64,000 bases of DNA from Trichosphaerium sp. ATCC 40318 (lineage: Eukaryota; Protista; Tubulinea), in contig JALMLS010000552.1 in NCBI GenBank assembly GCA_038496445.1, forward strand, positions 1-64,000, written 5' to 3'. The position numbers were made by a program, and so were the translations under genes. The notes beneath the pieces were generated by a model. The model had not been told where the DNA came from. It did no database searches and saw nothing but the letters and a program-made list of their open reading frames with translations. The number at the start of each line of letters is the position of its first letter. Position 1 is the first letter of the stretch. Of this stretch, positions 2,664-58,281 are shown piece after piece.

Positions 2664-5375
2664 ATGAAGCGCAACCTTACAACTTTTGTTTACGTACCTA
2701 CTTAGTTCTATTCGCTATATGTACTGCTCACGTACACAGTGCACATGAAGAACTTGACGGTAAATAGGTTTTCGTACTTTTACCCATTTAGAATTGAATT
2801 CTATTGATATTTACTCTACACGCATTGTAATAGTCGTAACCTTTGTTTTAGGGTTTGTTTGTGGTGAAAATTTTAAACATACTGAAATAGAGTATGACGA
2901 ACCTCCAGTACCAACAACTCATTCAAGATCGGCTAAAAGGTATGTTTGTAATAGTTTAATATTTTATGGAGTAACTGTACACTTTACATAACATACGACG
3001 TACTAACTATCCATAAGATCATCAGGTTCATGCATGACGTTCGTTATAAACTTTGGCGCGGGTATTAACCTTGTACGCGACGTCTACTGTTTGCAGTAAT
3101 ACTGTGGCTCTAATCTCTCATTACTAGCCTGAAAACGCTGGTATGAAAGCAACAGTACAGCTGGGAGCTGATATATGGGTACACAATCTTTACAAAGAAA
3201 TCCGTAACAACAGTTGATAGTCATCCGCTATCATCAGCGATAGGACAATATATTTGGACATGGAGGCAAGGGATGACTTTAGTTCTTCCAGCACTATCGG
3301 TTCAGCAAGTACTAGCGTAACATCATTTGGTGGCAATGCTCCTATTGTATTGTACGTTTTACGCTACTATTGACGCATATTTACACTTTTCAAAAGGGCT
3401 TATCTTGAAGCACATAATAATGCCACTTATCCTGCGGATATGACTGCATTCGATGGTATTCTTCCTCCTGTAAGTACTCCAAGTTTTTTTACAACGGTTG
3501 GCCTAGAAGTAGTAACCCGATCCAAAACCATTTTCCTGCGCGTTTTTATTACTACCTGCGCGTATACTCCCGGTACAGTTCAAATCGTTCAAATAGACCT
3601 GTAACTCTACTTTTTTTTCCCGCACGTGTTGAAACTGCGCATTTTATGAGCGAAATGAATCGTAAGCTCATTCTGTGGAAAAAAAAAAAGTAGCATGTGA
3701 ACGAATAGAACATCTGTGATTTTCCTTTTTTTTCTTCTCAATCATTCTCCTTGGCTCTGTTCTTATCTTGCTCCTAGGGTTTTACAATAGACCCAACCAG
3801 AATATCGCTCACAAGAGCTAATAGAAAAGTAATCGATCCAGACTATCAAATTACCTCCACTTTTAGAGATTCATCAATTTCGTTCAATACAGAGTTTTTC
3901 TTTGATACAGACTTAAGTGATGGTCTCACAGGGGTATGTCGCATATATACAAATCCACTTGTGGTCTTTTTTTTGCTTTCTAAGCTGTTGCCAAGTGACT
4001 TCATTTGAACTTAAAGTCGTTTTTGATCGTTTTTTTCTTAGGGTTCTATGAATTTACTTGCGGTTGTTGTTCATGAGATTGGACATGCTCTAGGTTTTAC
4101 ATCAGCACTTCAATCCGGTATATACACACATACTGCAAGAGCTGAGACAATAGCTAACTATCGTTGTTGTTTTAGTTGATGCTGCACTAGACGATGCAAG
4201 AAACCTAACAAATATTCGAATGAGGCCATATGATTTAATGAGAGTTCAATTAAGTAGCAGCTCTGCATTTGAAACAGCTGATAGACAGTGGACACCTGGT
4301 ACAAAGAATGATTTAGCAGGCTTAACAGCATTAAGTTCACTAACGTTTTAAAAGGTAATGTAGCTCACTATTTCGATCCAACGTCTGATACTGTATCTAC
4401 TGCAACGTATTCCACAGGTGTTAGTCAAGGAGACGGACGACAAACTTCTCATTGGAAGGTACCAAATCAAATTTATAAAAATGCTTGAAAGACATTGTAG
4501 ATAGTGCCTACTCAATAAAACGATTTTAGGATGCTAGGGCCATAGGTATTATGGATCCTACACTTTCAAGAAATAGGATAATAGGTATATCTACCACTGA
4601 CATATCAGCACTGAGTGGAATGGGATATGTTATAAATCGTAAGTAAACCTTTCCATCTATAACAAACTCATTTTTTTTCTTCTCATTTTAGCAGCGCTAA
4701 AGCCATTTCTTGTTTATATGCAAGCAAATGAAGGTGACCCAGGTGATGAGTTTCAGATTTGGGGTTATTTCTTTTTTGGTAATGTAACTTGCGACTTTGG
4801 TATTGCTGGTTCTACTGTTGCACAGAAAGATATTGAGTCTGGGGTCATTGTATGTCAACGAACATTTTTAGTTAATTTTTATTCAATCGATTTGTTACTA
4901 GCTTTGTACTGTTCCAAGTCCAGAAGTATCATACAATGGTACCATGGTTGTTACCTCAGATACAGGAACCTCTGACGAAAGACCATTTGTTATCAACGTT
5001 CCCTTACCACCTCCAACAACAGAAGCACCAACACCACCAGTTATCCCCTCAACGGCTGCCCCTACAACACTTCCTCCAACAACACTTCCTCCAACAACGC
5101 TCTCACCCACAACGGCTCCCCCTACAACACTTCCTCCAACTACACTTCCTCCAACAACGCTCTCACCCACAACGGCTGCCCCTACAACACTGCCTCCAAC
5201 AACAGTGCCACCTACAGCGCCAACGCCTGAACCTACCCAGGCTATCCCTACGCCAGCGCCGACATCACCAGTTGCGCCTTCAATAAATCGAATACGGTCT
5301 AATGCATATCGTATATCAACAATAGCTTTGAATACTATTGTTGTATTGAATGTACTTTGTTATTTATTCTTGTAA
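2664..5375 (+). CDS. Secreted/anchored zinc metalloprotease, NF038122-like, with Ig/TIG-like domain, PTT stalk and hydrophobic tail (multi-exon)
   Basis: Signal peptide MKRNLTTFVYVPTLVLFAICTA. Motifs LTRANRK (~3808), VVHEIGHALGFTS (~4066-4104) and spliced GDGRQTSHWK|DARAIGIMDPT (4429-4563). PPTTL repeats follow, then a hydrophobic C-terminus. Confidence 0.8.
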
Positions 5376-14531: not shown

Positions 14532-17911
<3,380 letters not shown>

Positions 17912-51259: not shown

Positions 51260-53856
51260 ATGAAGCACCTTTTCGTGTTTGCGATAACGTTTGGCATAGC
51301 CTGTGCACTAGTAGGACTAAAAAAACATGAAAAAAACTATGTAGTCGTTCCTACTCACATTGCATTCTATAAAACAACAACAAACGTTGGTGCGTTAGTG
51401 TTAAATACGTTTAGACGAAGTTCTAACCAAGAATAGCTACAAATTCGCTTGGTGGTCCATTTGGAGGACACAGGGTACGAAACTACGCCAACACTGGTGT
51501 TTTACAGTAGTTTGTTGACATTTTTGTATTTAGACTAAGATTGCTATCGATCATGTATCTAGAATGCATCCTGGTACCTCTTGGGAAGTAACAAGCGACT
51601 ACATCACTCAACACAATAACGTGGAACATGTTTATCTACGACAGATGATAAACAGTATCCCTGTAAGTAATTGCACCAGTTTCCGGCGACAAAGCTGAAA
51701 TTCACAGAATGTTGTCAAGCTTTGGGTGTAAAATTCGTTTCTAATTTTTTTTGAAGGTCACAAATGCTGTGGCTAATGTGAATATACGTGATGGCCATGT
51801 TCTAAGCATGGGAGCTACGGTGTTTAGCGGAGAAGCACCAGAGCTTCAAGCAACTGAAGTATCACATAAAGAAGTACTTGTTTGTTGTTGCACAAAGTCT
51901 CGGATTAATGTATTCGTCAACAACAGGCTTTCTTTCATATATTAAATCACTTGGAACGTATCGACAAAATCCAAGAAAAAATACCAGACATGGAGCTCGG
52001 ATACGTTATGCTTGAAGATAAAACTCTTGCTCTTTCTCATCATGTATGTTCTTTGTTTAATTATTACACATCTGGGGCCTCACATAGTTCTGTAGACGGT
52101 AGTTGATCTCCAAAGTGTTGGTTTGTTCCATATATTTGTAGACGTAACTTCAGGACATATTCATGCTTGCTATAACTGGGTCAAATACGAGGCACGATTG
52201 AACTTTTGTTCTCTCAATAAATTCCCTGCTAATATCGTAAAATAGAAAGAAAACGCAGCCATTTACCAGATAACTAACGCTGAGTACTCTGTGTTTACAT
52301 ACCCAGATCATTTAAATCCAAACCACGGTGTAGAACGTGTTGAAGTGTATGCACTTTTTTCTTTCTTTTTTCTCAGACACTAAATAACAATGTGTGTAGA
52401 TCTGATCCATGGACGAAATTCGGTCCCTTTGCAAGTCCTGATGGATGGCACTATATTAAGGTATAGTTTAATCTACTATACTTTGTAAATCACCAACTAA
52501 ATTACTACGTATAGGGTGAGATTACTGACTACCACGTGACTGTTGGCAACAATGTTTATGCACAAGAAAACCACAACGGGTATAGAGATTGGAAACTAAA
52601 CTACAGACCGGATGGTGGCCAACAAAAACATCTTAAGTTCGAATTCCCACTTGATCTAACTAAAGAGCCTTTCTTCTACGAAGATGCTAGTATTGTAAAT
52701 ATGTTCTATTGGAATAATGTTCTACATGACTTGTTTTTTGTAAGTGGTTTTGATGAAGCCGCTGGAAACTTCCAAGCCAGCAATTTCAACGGTAAAGGGT
52801 TAGGCAATGATGCTGTTATTGCTAAGTCTATTGACTCAACTTGTAAGAACAACGCTTACTTTTCTACTCCTCCTGATGGTACGTTCTTTCGAATCCAATT
52901 CTAAGAAAAATATGAGAATTAACTGCTATTTGTTGATAGGTCAGAGTGGTAAAATGGTTTTGTGTAAATGGGACAAAACAGAACCCCAGCGTGATGCTGC
53001 TCTTGATTCTCAAATCATGATTCACGAATACGGTCATGGTGTCTCAAATCGGTACGGTTTTTTTCCGTTGTCTGCAGTTATTTTCAATTGATATCATCTA
53101 GTCTCACTGGAGGTCCACAAGATGTGAACTGTTTAAACGCAGACTTACCATCCGGTATGGGAGAAGGTTGGAGTGATTGGTGGGCTATAATGCTAGCAAC
53201 AACAGTTGATGATGCTGCAGACACTGCGTTTGTTATTGGAGCTTATGGTAAGCGTTTACCCTTTTTATAGTTTGCTAACTAGCGTAGTTAATAATAATAA
53301 AACTGGTCTCCGTCCGTTCCCTTATGCTTACAATCTTACTGTAAATCCACAAAGCTACGTGATGACTTCATTGCCAGAATACCAAGAACCACACGCCAGA
53401 GGAAGTATTTGGGCCACAATTCTCTTCAGTGTTTACTGGGAGATGCGTATGGAGTACGGCTATGATCCTGACTGGGTGAATGGTACTGCTGGAAACAACA
53501 TGATATGGCAAAATGTCGTAGATGGTCTCAAGCACGTCCTTAAAACATTATTCTAACGAACTAAGACATACATAGAATGCAACCTTGCTCTCCGAATTTC
53601 GTTCAAGCCAGAGATGCTATAATCCATGCTGATGAAGTAAACCACAGTTTTGAACATGTTTGCACAATGTGGAAGGTATGAATATCATTTTTTATTTTAT
53701 CACGTGATGGTAGTCAACACCAGCTTGTGGTGTAATAAACCAGTGCTTATTCTTTGATAGGGTTTTGCAAGAAGAGGTTTAGGCGTAAAAGCATTCGCTA
53801 CTTCAGACCCTGTTAGAGAAGATTACAGCATCCCTGACAGATGTGGTCCTTTCTAG
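51260..53856 (+). CDS. M36 (fungalysin) metallopeptidase with FTP propeptide, many introns
   Basis: Signal peptide, VEHVYLRQ..|[42 protein letters not shown]|[21 protein letters not shown] and [14 protein letters not shown]. Confidence 0.95.
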
Positions 53857-54112
53857 TACAACAATAAATACCACATACAACATGCAGTAATTATGTTTGA
53901 CGTTCAGTTATCCTTTTGAGAAAAATATGAGATTTGTACCAGCTTGCAGTTAGTTCCTACAAGCATTAAACTACTCTTTGGAAGTGCCATGGATAGTTGA
54001 GTGGTTTTAGTGACAATACAGTCACTCCAGCACGTGGTCACAACTGGTAAACAAATTGGCTACAGTCAAAATGATACAAATGTATACTAATGTTACACGT
54101 GGCACCTTCTAG

Positions 54113-57100
54113 CGGCTATGATGCACCTCCAGTTGTTCGTTTGGACCCTATTGCGCGTATCTTGTTAATGGGCGTTTATGACGATAATAATCCTCTATCA
54201 GTATTAAGCTCGTTATCCGTAACAAAAAAAAAAATTACCTGTAACAAGATGTAATAAAAACCACTGTTGACCACCACAACTTTAATACTACTACAGTTGT
54301 TACCTATTCTGATAGCGCAAAAGTCCAATCACGCTGAATAAAACGTAAAACATTAGCAAGCTATGAAATCGCGTAAAAGACGTGCCTATACACTTCATTT
54401 TCAACGTGATAATGTTGGCAGGGCTAAAGAGAAGGCACAGGCAAAAAAACGTAAAATATCTGACACTCGAGCGCAAAACAGACTAAAAGCGCAAAAAAAA
54501 AAACAAATAAGAACAACAGAGCAGAGTACAAACCTAAACAAAGTAATTGACGATGGTTGGCAAGTGTTACCGGACGAGATAATTTCCTTCCCTGAAATCA
54601 AGCATGTCTCTGAACCCTCTGGTAAAACTGGACGTTTTATATCCAACACAGCTAAGTTGTTTGAGCGGTTGATACCTAGACACATTTGGGAGTTTATTTT
54701 TGAGGCGACAGAACAAACACGTCAAGACCACGAAGATGAGTTCCCAGAATCAAACAGGACTTGGCATACTCCGTTTACCTTGCAAGAGATAATTCAAATG
54801 TTTGGTACATTACTTTTGTGGGAACAACGTTCCGGTGAGAGTAGTTACACGAATTTTTTGAACCAATTGAATGAATGGAAAAAAAAGGCACATTGGTGTA
54901 AAAAAAAACCAATTCCAGAAAGGCGATTTGGTGTTTTAAGGAAATGTCTTACTGCTGATGTGTATGAACTGTGTCGTAAGGTGTCAAAATGCTTAAAAAT
55001 GGCTTGGAAATCAGGGTACATAATTGTAATAGACGAAACAATGTTAGAATGGAAAGGAAAAGGAGACAGTATAATGTGTATCAAAGGCAAACCCCATCCA
55101 CTAGGCCTTATGATCTACCTAATGGCGGTTTATTCTGACAAACATCAACACAAGCCATACATTTTGGGAATATACCCACATTGGATGCCTCATGCAAAGC
55201 CACTGGATGCAACTAAACACTTGTTGGATTCCTTTTCATCACATTATAATTTCAAACCACATGTTGTGTTAGATTCAAGATTTATGGACAGGAGTTTTAT
55301 GGGTTGGATGCGGCACTACATTGGAAGTGATGAAGGAGGAGCTACTGTTGCAATATCTGCTAACCAGCAGAAAAAACTATTTACCACTCTTGCTTGTGAC
55401 GTTCCAGTTAACAAATGGAGAATTGCAAAGAACAACAAGACAGGTGAAGTCGCTTCTTACAAACATGTTCACAATGATAGTGGGGATCCTGTACATTGGC
55501 GACTATTAACATTAGGTTGGAGTGTTGGTAGCCACGCCATGTTGAATAGCATGCCTGCCTTTTCAAAGCTCGCAGAGTTTGAACTTTTGTGCAAAAATTT
55601 TACTGTAGACTCATTAATAGGCTTTGTTAGAAACAGCAACAAAGTAGCAACAGGCGGCAAAGAAGAGTTAGCTATGGCAGCTTTAAACTTAACTGCACTT
55701 GACGTGGCATCACTAAGAGAGGTGCGAGATATTAGAACTGCAGAACAACAAGCCAGGGAAGAGCAAAAAAACAAACAACAACGAAAAACCAACATTCATT
55801 GTGTGAAAAAGTGTTTATACGGAGGCAAAGATGACAAAAAAAAAGCAATGATGTTGTGCAATTGTTGCAGCACATGGTTCCATGGAAAATGCTTAGGATT
55901 GAGTGATAAACAACTTGCTCAATCAAACCCAAAAGAACGTTTTTACTGTAAAAGTTGTGAAAACAAACTGGTTCAAGTCCGCACTAAATCAAAAACCTGG
56001 ACCCGAGAAGAGTTAGAAAAAATGGACAAAACTGAATTACTAATCCAATGCCAAGTGTTGGGCGAAAAACGAGCTGGTAACAAACCAGCATTAATTGCTA
56101 AAATCTTAAAAGCAAGTGATCCAACATTTGAAAATAATTTTGCTATTCAAAATAAGCAATTTTTGGGGCCTCCTCGCTCTGGTCCTGCCGTGATGCATGA
56201 TTTTTATAAGTCTCACTTTGATGTTGTTGATCGTGCTAATCAAACTAAGTGGAGTACCTCAATACCTGGTCGAGCAACAGAACAATCTTATCGAATGATT
56301 ATTGGAATAATGAAAACAACCATTACATCTCTTGGTGCCATCATGGATTATAATTTGGAAGATAAATGCCCTAATCACAATCAAATACATCTTACACTTG
56401 CAAAGGCCATGTACAATGGCAACATTTATAAGTAATGTATAACAATAAATAAAAAAAAATTTCTTTGAGACTACATTTCTAATTCTTTATTCATAATGTA
56501 GCGCTAGTGAAATTATGATAGTAGCTACCTAGCTAGCAGCTGATGTAACAGAAAGTGTTTCAAATAACAACAAAGTAACGTTCTGAATTTTTTTTTTGTA
56601 TACACAAAAAACAACCCAAAAAAAGTAATCACAAACAGCAAAAGTCATAAAACAATGTTGTGTATATAAACACAGCTGTATTATATAGGATCAAATAATC
56701 AAGAAACCACATGCACAATTGTAGCATATAAATTGCGTTTTGAAAACATACAAAAAGTCCAAAAATCCATTTTGTGGAAGTGTTTGTAGCAACTTCAGAT
56801 GAACAATTCAAGCATAGTGCTCATATATGACCCATAACACGGCAATTTGAATCAAAATTATCCAAAATTGAATGAAAGAGTCTGTGTAGCAAACACGACA
56901 AATTTGAAAAAAACAGTTTTTAATTTTCAACAAACTTTATGACACTTGCCAACTCCATCACCAACATTTAGTGCTTCAATTAGTCGGTATGATATTACAA
57001 TGGTCTTCATTTACATTATAAGCAAACAACCGCAAATGCTGAGTCAAATGATGGAACATTATTGCTATATTGTAAACTCATGTATAAAAAACGGGAAAAA

Positions 57101-58281
57101 TTGGAATCAGTAGCTTTGGACTAACAACTTGTTACGAAATACTATTATCATGAAGACATATGTTTTGCACTTACAGTCATGATTAGAAATGATGATGCGC
57201 ACAGCAAAGAAATTCGAAATAAGGGTGCTGAGGCATAAGAGTAGAAAAAATTTGTTACAGCGTATCTTGTTAATGGGCGTTTATGACGATAATAATCCTC
57301 TATCAGTATTAAGGGGTACGACACATACGCGCAATTAGTAAAATAACGCGGTTTAAACCGTTTTTTTCAAAAACAACTCGAAACACGTTTATTTCATGTT
57401 AAAAGCGAGTAATAGGTGTTGGATACACTGTAATAAAGCTTATTTGGGAATACGTACTGGAATACAACAAGGAGCACTACGACCCGTTCATTATAGTCCC
57501 ACCACGAAGTAAATATCGCTTTGGTGCATATTTCGCCACCATCGACAAGATATTATGTGAATCACACGAGGGCGATTCATGGGATGACGAACCGGCTGGT
57601 TTTGGAAAGGTAATTTATAGCAAGTTTCCGTCACCTTCAGGAAAAGATATTGATATCAACATGATGCCTCTAATGATGAACAAAAAACTCTTTAAAGATC
57701 AACTCCCAGAAGAGTTGTGGCCTTTCATATACTTACTGGATATTGCTCTTACTGTAGATAGATACCAGGAAGGTACAATATGCTTCTTAACAATACAAGA
57801 GTCTTTTGTTGAAAAAGGTAAAACGCAACGAAGACCAGGTGTTCACGTTGAGTTTCCTGGTACGCTAAAAACATCACATGGATATTACGATGACGCTTGG
57901 GGTGGAGGATATGGTTTAAGCGATGGTATGTTTATTGCTACAAACTTGGATGACACGTGCGCTGTCTGGGATGTAAGCATTGAGGATAAAAAAGACGGAA
58001 CATCAGTTATTGGTTCTTTGGGTGATTTGGAACATTTGAAGAATGTCTTGCCTAGAGAAACAATGTCGTTGCTTAAAGGTAGGGCAATGTATTGGCTAAC
58101 AGATAGAACACCACATGAGGCATTACCAATGAAAGAATCAGGAAGAAGGATATTCTTTAGGTTAGTTTCGAATAAGCTTGGTATGTGGTATGAATCTCAT
58201 TCTACAAAGAATCCGATTGGTATTGTTCCTGATCCCAAAAAAACAAGGATAATCAAAGAGAACAAGTTTTTAGATGCGTAA
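54113..58281 (+). CDS. Conserved hypothetical protein (2OG-Fe(II)-oxygenase-like fold suspected), interrupted by the transposon
   Basis: Removing the element and one repeat joins GYDAPPVVRLDPIARILLMGVYDDNNPLSVLR to GTTH|..VLDTVIKLIWEYV... The core has INMMP, LTIQESFV..G.TQRRPGVHVE, WLTDRTPHEALP and FFRLVS. True start lies upstream of 54113 and is unresolved. Confidence 0.7.
54155..54208 (+). repeat. Left copy of exact 54-bp direct repeat
   Basis: gcgtatcttgttaatgggcgtttatgacgataataatcctctatcagtattaag, identical to 57260-57313. Confidence 0.97.
54208..57259 (+). mobile_element. piggyBac-superfamily DNA transposon, ~3.05 kb
   Basis: Begins right after TTAA (54204-54207). Left end gctcgttatccGTAACAAA..ctGTAACAA is inverted relative to right end TTTGTTACag. 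Holds one transposase ORF and interrupts a host gene. Confidence 0.85.
54363..56435 (+). CDS. piggyBac-like DDD transposase with inserted SAP-PHD-SAP module
   Basis: IVIDETMLEWKG, KGKPHPLGL, VVLDSRF and FYKSHFDVVDRAN are the piggyBac catalytic blocks. A C4HC3 PHD (~55797-55958) and a SAP (LEKMDKTELLIQCQVLGEKRAGNKPALIAKI) lie before the last Asp. Intact, intronless, 690 aa. Confidence 0.9.
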   Translation: MKSRKRRAYTLHFQRDNVGRAKEKAQAKKRKISDTRAQNRLKAQKKKQIRTTEQSTNLNKVIDDGWQVLPDEIISFPEIKHVSEPSGKTGRFISNTAKLFERLIPRHIWEFIFEATEQTRQDHEDEFPESNRTWHTPFTLQEIIQMFGTLLLWEQRSGESSYTNFLNQLNEWKKKAHWCKKKPIPERRFGVLRKCLTADVYELCRKVSKCLKMAWKSGYIIVIDETMLEWKGKGDSIMCIKGKPHPLGLMIYLMAVYSDKHQHKPYILGIYPHWMPHAKPLDATKHLLDSFSSHYNFKPHVVLDSRFMDRSFMGWMRHYIGSDEGGATVAISANQQKKLFTTLACDVPVNKWRIAKNNKTGEVASYKHVHNDSGDPVHWRLLTLGWSVGSHAMLNSMPAFSKLAEFELLCKNFTVDSLIGFVRNSNKVATGGKEELAMAALNLTALDVASLREVRDIRTAEQQAREEQKNKQQRKTNIHCVKKCLYGGKDDKKKAMMLCNCCSTWFHGKCLGLSDKQLAQSNPKERFYCKSCENKLVQVRTKSKTWTREELEKMDKTELLIQCQVLGEKRAGNKPALIAKILKASDPTFENNFAIQNKQFLGPPRSGPAVMHDFYKSHFDVVDRANQTKWSTSIPGRATEQSYRMIIGIMKTTITSLGAIMDYNLEDKCPNHNQIHLTLAKAMYNGNIYK
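57260..57313 (+). repeat. Right copy of exact 54-bp direct repeat
   Basis: Identical to 54155-54208; followed by the continuation of the host reading frame. Confidence 0.97.

Follow-up and report, generated by a model that had tools for sequence, protein, structure and literature searches.

How did a piggyBac-related transposon come to lie between two identical 54-nt copies of host coding sequence? The question is raised by a 64,000-nt stretch of the genome of Trichosphaerium sp. ATCC 40318 (contig JALMLS010000552.1, positions 1 to 64,000, forward strand; hereafter the window), which corresponds to C135:1-64000 in the assembly that we searched (70.3 Mb in 642 contigs). Judging from its sequence and from that of its relatives, the element is a 3088-bp cut-and-paste transposon that inserted at TTAAG in exon 1 of a host gene. 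The 54-nt repeat around it is the sum of two parts, the 5-bp target duplication that is normal for its family and a 49-bp repair copy of the left flank, the latter most likely left behind when only one end of the element was integrated.

An exact repeat in a host exon

Positions 54155-54208 and 57260-57313 agree over all 54 nt (100% identity, 3105 nt from start to start), and the original prediction of an exact repeat linked to the insertion is thereby confirmed. A search of the whole genome returned just these two copies of the exact sequence, the remaining matches being paralogues at 78-87% identity, and the chance expectation of such a pair in 64 kb is ~1e-23. The repeat is host coding sequence, as had also been proposed, and forms the 3' portion of exon 1 (ATG at 54090, 39 codons, ending ...ARILLMGVYDDNNPLSVL), whose start codon and frame are conserved in two paralogues on C182 (C182a/b). 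Host flanks and exons were compared separately, by reference. In three paralogous loci (two on C182 and one on C80) the 54-nt stretch is present once and continues directly into the downstream sequence, and these loci can serve as proxies for the empty site. By the same comparison, the left copy of the repeat (54155-54208) is the original host sequence, at the end of the upstream copy of exon 1 (54090-54208, + strand) that now abuts the transposon.

A family that duplicates five base pairs

The transposon copy spans 3051 bp (54209-57259, + strand) and is 99% identical to a sister copy on C397 (C397:13474-16561), in which, unlike here, the final 30-31 bp of the 3088-bp element are present. It starts with CTCGTTATCC at 54209, immediately 3' of TTAAG, and its left terminal inverted repeat is complete (39 bp, 54209-54247, + strand), with two copies of a ~13-bp motif and a run of A between them. 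In reverse complement, the right end of the C397 copy (16523-16561, minus strand) is 90% identical to this repeat. All copies of the family share the start CTCGTTAT, and the relatives found in this genome comprise, besides the sister on C397, an autonomous copy on C455 (76%) and about 12 non-autonomous derivatives of 1.1-1.5 kb, two of which, on C2 and C193, are 99% alike and have ends that match those of the window copy. In the two-ended copies the right end is a similar 39-bp sequence in reverse complement, with two ~13-nt motifs around a homopolymer run. The termini, CTCGTT.../...AAAGAG, make up a 39-bp imperfect inverted repeat in which the first C is kept and CCC is not.

The length of the target duplication in other copies, which the original prediction had proposed to tabulate, turned out to be uniform. 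All 13 two-ended copies, each with full 39-bp repeats, are flanked by an exact duplication of 5 bp, never six, with the consensus N-T-W-A-N (T at position 2, A or T at position 3 and A at position 4, each in 13/13). The TTAAG at 54204-54208 fits this consensus and represents the left copy of the canonical duplication in the window, adjoining the terminus at the same position as in the 13 others. Three of the 13 duplications do not contain TTAA (CTAAA, ATAAA, and GTAAA), and a 4-bp TTAA-only duplication or a long duplication was found in none of the 13 two-ended copies in this genome. The available proxies for empty sites (the host paralogues and the partner arm on C576, see below) agree with a duplication of 5 bp. 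The target duplication of the family is 5 bp, N-T-W-A-N, rather than the 4-bp TTAA that had been taken as the norm. The anatomy proposed for the left end, TTAA followed by 11 nt and GTAACAAA, has to be given up as well, since those 11 nt are no spacer: they comprise the final base of the target, followed by the inverted repeat up to its tenth base.

Two further observations were made on the copies used here. One and the same insertion, with its flank, is present on C397 and at the end of C428 (99.66% over 1756 bp), and a second such pair is formed by C231 and the end of C7; the assembly thus contains redundant or allelic contigs (C397/C428, C231/C7). A distant relative with PF13843 and SAP domains was found in a Joint Genome Institute (JGI) metagenome contig (L063 76-2193, protein P0056). 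It has perfect 47-bp inverted repeats and is flanked by ATACC and ATTCC, which are identical at 4/5 positions and are not TTAA. These flanks are suggestive only, but the 5-bp duplication could reach beyond this genome. Among the outside relatives considered for this feature, P0056 alone showed clear inverted repeats, the contigs of P0001, P0014, P0016, and P0039 being too short or lacking DNA.

A right end without a terminus

At the right end, the window copy is collinear with C397 up to TTTGTTACAG (57251-57260) and then passes into host sequence identical to that from 54156 onward, whereas the C397 copy continues for 30 further bases to the terminus ...AAAGAG, followed by its duplication ATAAA. 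The right repeat in the window therefore lacks its terminal 30-31 bp. The final bases retained (57251-57259, + strand) belong to the inner motif TTTGTTACA, and the single G at 57260 can be assigned either to the element or to the host, a 1-nt microhomology at the end-joined junction. From here, 49 nt (57260-57308) duplicate host positions 54155-54203 in place of the terminal 30-31 bp of the repeat. They are followed at 57309-57313 by TTAAG, the right copy of the canonical duplication, which is continuous with the downstream host sequence, as judged from the sequence itself and from the paralogues. That the truncation affects the window copy is supported by its sister on C397, which has an intact open reading frame (ORF), a complete right repeat and a 5-bp ATAAA duplication.

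The right-hand TTTGTTAC is the inner, not the outer, of the two repeated motifs of the right inverted repeat. It had been noted that the repeat contains two TTAA sites and that both ends show the same spacing of a motif, 11 nt and TTAA. These features are literally present, but their symmetry is coincidental, the right-hand TTTGTTAC being an inner motif. The nucleotides 3' of it are indeed host-derived, as stated in the original prediction, while the normal right end that it predicted is not the one seen in the sister copy, the full right end of C397 being 30-31 bp longer. A joint made by a transposase needs the transposon's own 3' terminus. The right junction of the window copy has none, and it follows that host end joining, and not the transposase, made this junction.

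A second scar and other unpaired ends

The same architecture was found in a copy on C576 (L005 1501-3022), ~87% identical to the copy on C455. Its left junction is normal, with ...TTTAT followed by CTCGTT, while its right repeat is 11-13 bp short and gives way to an exact 15-nt repeat of the left flank (L005 1486-1500 = 3023-3037; the whole scar, L005 1486-3037, is C576:7907-9458). These 15 nt can be divided into the 5-bp TTTAT and 8-10 nt more, with a 2-nt microhomology at the junction. The target lies within one arm of a local inverted repeat whose other arm (L005 1149-1262) is uninterrupted and has the 15 nt once, providing the empty state. The C576 copy is a second, independent and older case of what is seen in the window.

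In a census of intact termini, four left ends had no proper right partner (C135, C576, C459, and C8) and no right end was without its left. The copy on C8 breaks off at 462 bp, shows no repeat of the flank and gives no information. The one on C459 (L050 101-500, C459:14449-14850) is internally deleted and has a normal left junction, TTAAA followed by CTCATT. In place of its right end stands TTTAA, and behind it a right inverted repeat that is turned around (~33 nt, degenerate); this could be the palindromic scar of a mis-opened end hairpin or a head-to-head fragment.

Origin of the scar

Among the three options put forward in the original prediction, we prefer, with moderate confidence, a one-ended insertion repaired by synthesis, in which the left end would have been integrated alone and the host would have joined the eroded right end. 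The transposase would transfer the left end alone into one target strand, and the free 3'-OH of the nicked target strand would then be extended along the intact strand, displacing ~54 nt of the old strand attached to the transposon. The intact target strand would subsequently break at the branch. Finally, the untransferred right end, perhaps an unopened hairpin, would be eroded by 30-31 bp and ligated to the break by host end joining. Three features fit such a product. The left junction is canonical, TTAAG abutting CTCGTT as in all other copies of the family; the other end is shortened and joined with minimal homology (1 nt in the window, 2 nt in C576); and the host duplication exceeds the canonical one and is contiguous with the target (49+5 nt in the window, 8-10+5 nt in C576). 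This route needs no distant template, and it explains why the extra copy starts exactly at the canonical target.

Several points weigh against it. A later break at the right end followed by repair would yield the same product as one-ended integration, and the sequence cannot separate the two. The cut of the second strand at a distance of 49 nt (window) or 8-10 nt (C576) is assumed, and both junctions in the window are known from the assembly alone. Just two clear cases are available (the window and C576), and the excess of unpaired left ends over right ends is suggestive but not significant (one-sided p ~0.06). In every model, the steps that follow the left-end joint are inferred.

The later break is the strongest competitor, possible although less probable. 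Here a normal two-ended insertion with its 5-bp duplication would have come first, and the right end alone would have been cut afterward, whether by an accidental break or by an abortive excision. Of the two sides of the cut, that of the element would have lost 30-31 bp and that of the host would have gained 49 nt, templated by an empty homologue or, by way of the 5-nt duplication, by the left flank, before both were end-joined. This history predicts the exact product, including the microhomology of 1 nt in the window and 2 nt in C576. Aborted synthesis-dependent strand annealing (SDSA) followed by end joining is documented after P-element excision, as are templated insertions (PMC2895639), and filler DNA at transposon break sites has been described too (PMC5023962). 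The duplicate contigs (C397/C428 at 99.7%; C231/C7) hint at two haplotypes, by which an empty homologue becomes possible. However, single-end cleavage is required, while cut-and-paste excision is normally concerted, and the template has to be free of the insertion, since copying from the sister chromatid would simply bring the end back. At 8-49 nt, the tracts of synthesis are also short for SDSA, and the empty allele that the original prediction suggested looking for is absent from the assembly at the window site, where only the paralogues at 78-87% are found. A template switch during replication would give an identical product, if a strand stalled in the right inverted repeat switched to the left flank by a match of 1 nt, copied as far as the left TTAAG and returned through the 5-nt identity. 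The T10 run and the two direct ~13-nt motif copies in the right repeat could favor stalling, with the 5-bp duplication as the return microhomology, but two switches across 3 kb would be needed, the first with 1 nt of homology, and C576 would require the same double switch independently. We regard this as a long shot.

The long duplication could also be absent from the organism and result from the assembly, for example from a mis-joined heterozygous insertion. The evidence consists of assembled contigs, some of them redundant (C397/C428, C231/C7), and 54 is k-1 for the common k-mer size of 55. Yet graph and overlap assemblers rely on long stretches in common and could not have created, without reads containing it, a right junction whose partners share 1 nt; the truncation lies within the element, away from the boundary of the repeat; and the same architecture, with a repeat of another length (15 nt), is found in the old, diverged copy on C576, all of which makes an artefact very improbable. 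Hardly credible at all is an insertion made by the transposase with a very long stagger, be it through distant attack sites, a family given to long duplications or a cryptic inner end, although the stump ...CAG faintly resembles the true terminus ...GAG. The stagger of DDE enzymes is fixed by the geometry of the synaptic complex (PMC5041404), and it amounts to exactly 5 bp in 13/13 intact copies of this family. The right junction is without the terminal 30-31 bp kept by every mobile copy, and the stump in C576 ends at a different, non-homologous position, with a flank repeat of 15 nt instead of 54. Attack of the two ends on TTAA sites 39 bp apart is excluded by the lack of a transposon terminus at the right junction, and a long-duplication family by this and by the census.

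One-ended integration, the reading that we prefer, resembles events known from other systems. When integrase inserts only one retroviral end, in avian sarcoma-leukosis virus (ASLV) with one defective end or in human immunodeficiency virus type 1 (HIV-1) with a sub-optimal integrase inhibitor or weak integrase mutants, one junction is normal, the other end is truncated and the host duplication is much longer than 5 bp (PMC5041404). The window shares with these aberrant integrations the canonical junction on one side and, on the other, a truncated, host-joined end with a duplication well above the canonical 5 bp. They were obtained in cultured cells, with duplications of up to kilobases, whereas here we deal with a natural DNA transposon in a genome assembly and with duplications of 15 and 54 bp. 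Single-ended products are also frequent for piggyBac in human cells (PMC3952818), attesting that a piggyBac-type enzyme is able to transfer one end alone. In that system the second end stayed on the donor plasmid, unlike in the window, where it would have been free, eroded and joined beside the target. A later break would resemble the aborted SDSA with end joining that follows P-element excision in Drosophila (PMC2895639), with which the window would share a break at a transposon end, short templated synthesis and joining with low microhomology, but there the template was a sister copy of the element and not the host flank.

A wider proposition, which we consider doubtful, is that the asymmetry is built into an undescribed branch of piggyBac elements with a 5-nt stagger, in which the left end would be transferred first, or alone, to an appreciable extent, and the right end would often be a closed hairpin opened by the host. 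If this were true, the branch would regularly yield right ends that are truncated or palindromic, next to enlarged duplications of the flank, and copies that are immobilised but coding-competent would build up as fixed sources of transposase.

The transposase

The element carries an intact transposase gene of 690 aa (54363-56435, + strand), in which Pfam, a profile search and an alignment delineate a PF13843 core with D224, D304, and D623 and a PHD finger at residues 484-532, located between the second and third Asp. Pfam recognizes PF13843 (DDE_Tnp_1_7) at 26 bits against a cut-off of 22.4, in residues 203-286 only. An exhaustive HMMER profile search gave 156 relatives, and the full-length ones contain PF13843 at 37-47 bits, over up to 327 of the 349 profile positions, often together with a SAP domain. 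The nearest Atlas cluster, 'Transposase IS4/SAP', has PF13843 in 100% and SAP in 55% of cases. In a 10-sequence alignment with PF13843 relatives, D224 (with E225) and D304 do not vary, and the conservation of D623 is 90% or more; the three would correspond to D268, D346, and D447 of piggyBac. A word-based protein search with the 690-aa ORF gave no match at E <= 0.001, and a sequence search of PDB (phmmer) retrieved PHD fingers only and no piggyBac chain. No C-terminal Cys-rich DNA-binding domain was found; the sole Cys-rich module is the PHD finger that precedes the third Asp, and nothing follows the catalytic core. The enzyme is thus a divergent member of the piggyBac type with extra modules between its second and third catalytic Asp.

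The resemblance to the piggyBac superfamily (T. ni piggyBac, piggyBac-like elements, PF13843) lies in a PF13843 match above the curated cut-off with three conserved Asp, in cut-and-paste transposition, in inverted repeats that start with C and are accompanied by subterminal motifs, and in an AT-rich palindromic target that often contains TTAA. The differences are the duplication of 5 bp (N-T-W-A-N) in place of the 4-bp TTAA, termini of the form CTC...GAG instead of CCC...GGG, the lack of a C-terminal Cys-rich domain, and the presence of a PHD finger and of SAP-like segments in the interval from the second to the third Asp. The assembly offers no polymorphic empty sites from which the seamless excision of the superfamily, through hairpins at the transposon ends, could be read. 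In a survey that covered 157 piggyBac-like elements, the duplication was TTAA in all but a few single-copy cases, whose deviating 4-bp sites were attributed to mutation (PMC5381638). We found no report of a 5-bp duplication in the superfamily in a literature search that was incomplete and did not cover Repbase.

The interrupted gene and its surroundings

The insertion point lies 2-3 nt upstream of the splice donor of exon 1, and the start codon is now 3.1 kb away from the rest of the gene. This remainder (57316-58281, + strand), collinear with the paralogues, contains GTACGA at 57316, a likely splice donor, then an intron and the open frame of exon 2 (57403-58281). Owing to the extra 49-nt copy (within 57260-57315), an in-frame ATG (57272-57274, encoding the M of LLMGVY), 14 codons and the context of the splice donor are again present 3' of the element, where a plain 5-bp insertion would have left none of them. 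The gene is a member of a small paralogous family (two copies on C182, one each on C80 and C64). Its product matches no Pfam family, and in the Atlas it most resembles (0.97-0.98) hypothetical proteins without a name, for the most part those of phages and bacteria. Farther upstream (52536-53556, + strand), short open frames resemble pieces of one intron-split zinc metalloprotease gene (HEYGHG; fungalysin-like, by eye).

Age and significance

The window copy differs from its sister on C397 by 39 substitutions in 3051 bp (1.3%). Only 14 of these fall in the 2.07-kb ORF (four amino-acid changes) vs. 25 in the ~0.8 kb after it, ~4.5 times denser outside, a distribution suggesting that the transposase ORF has been under constraint. 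A recent event had been deduced from the intact ORF and the absence of mismatches in the repeat. The ORF is intact indeed, at 690 aa, but at 1.3% divergence a 54-nt stretch should show ~0.7 differences, and the lack of any is hardly informative on the age of the event.

The scar adds a new natural instance to a kind of event already known, while the 5-bp, non-TTAA duplication is the more unusual departure. A false lead is removed, as no new long-stagger transposition chemistry is involved. What the locus probably provides is a clean natural example, found twice in one family, of how a eukaryotic genome handles a half-finished insertion of a DNA transposon, with an outcome that matches forced one-ended retroviral integrations. 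The 5-bp N-T-W-A-N duplication, seen in 13 copies of a PF13843 family, stands against the view in the literature of TTAA as a defining trait of the superfamily, and it bears both on how the target length is set and on programs that use TTAA to classify transposons automatically.

With one usable end, the window copy is probably immobile. From its fixed position it may supply transposase to the non-autonomous relatives of 1.1-1.2 kb whose ends match its own. Similar cases are 'wings-clipped' P and fractured Ac, helper elements that are terminally deleted and encode transposase but cannot move. The window copy, whose transposase gene is intact while one of its ends is dead, would be a natural 'clipped' element of this sort and a candidate for a stable enzyme source on which small non-autonomous relatives could draw.

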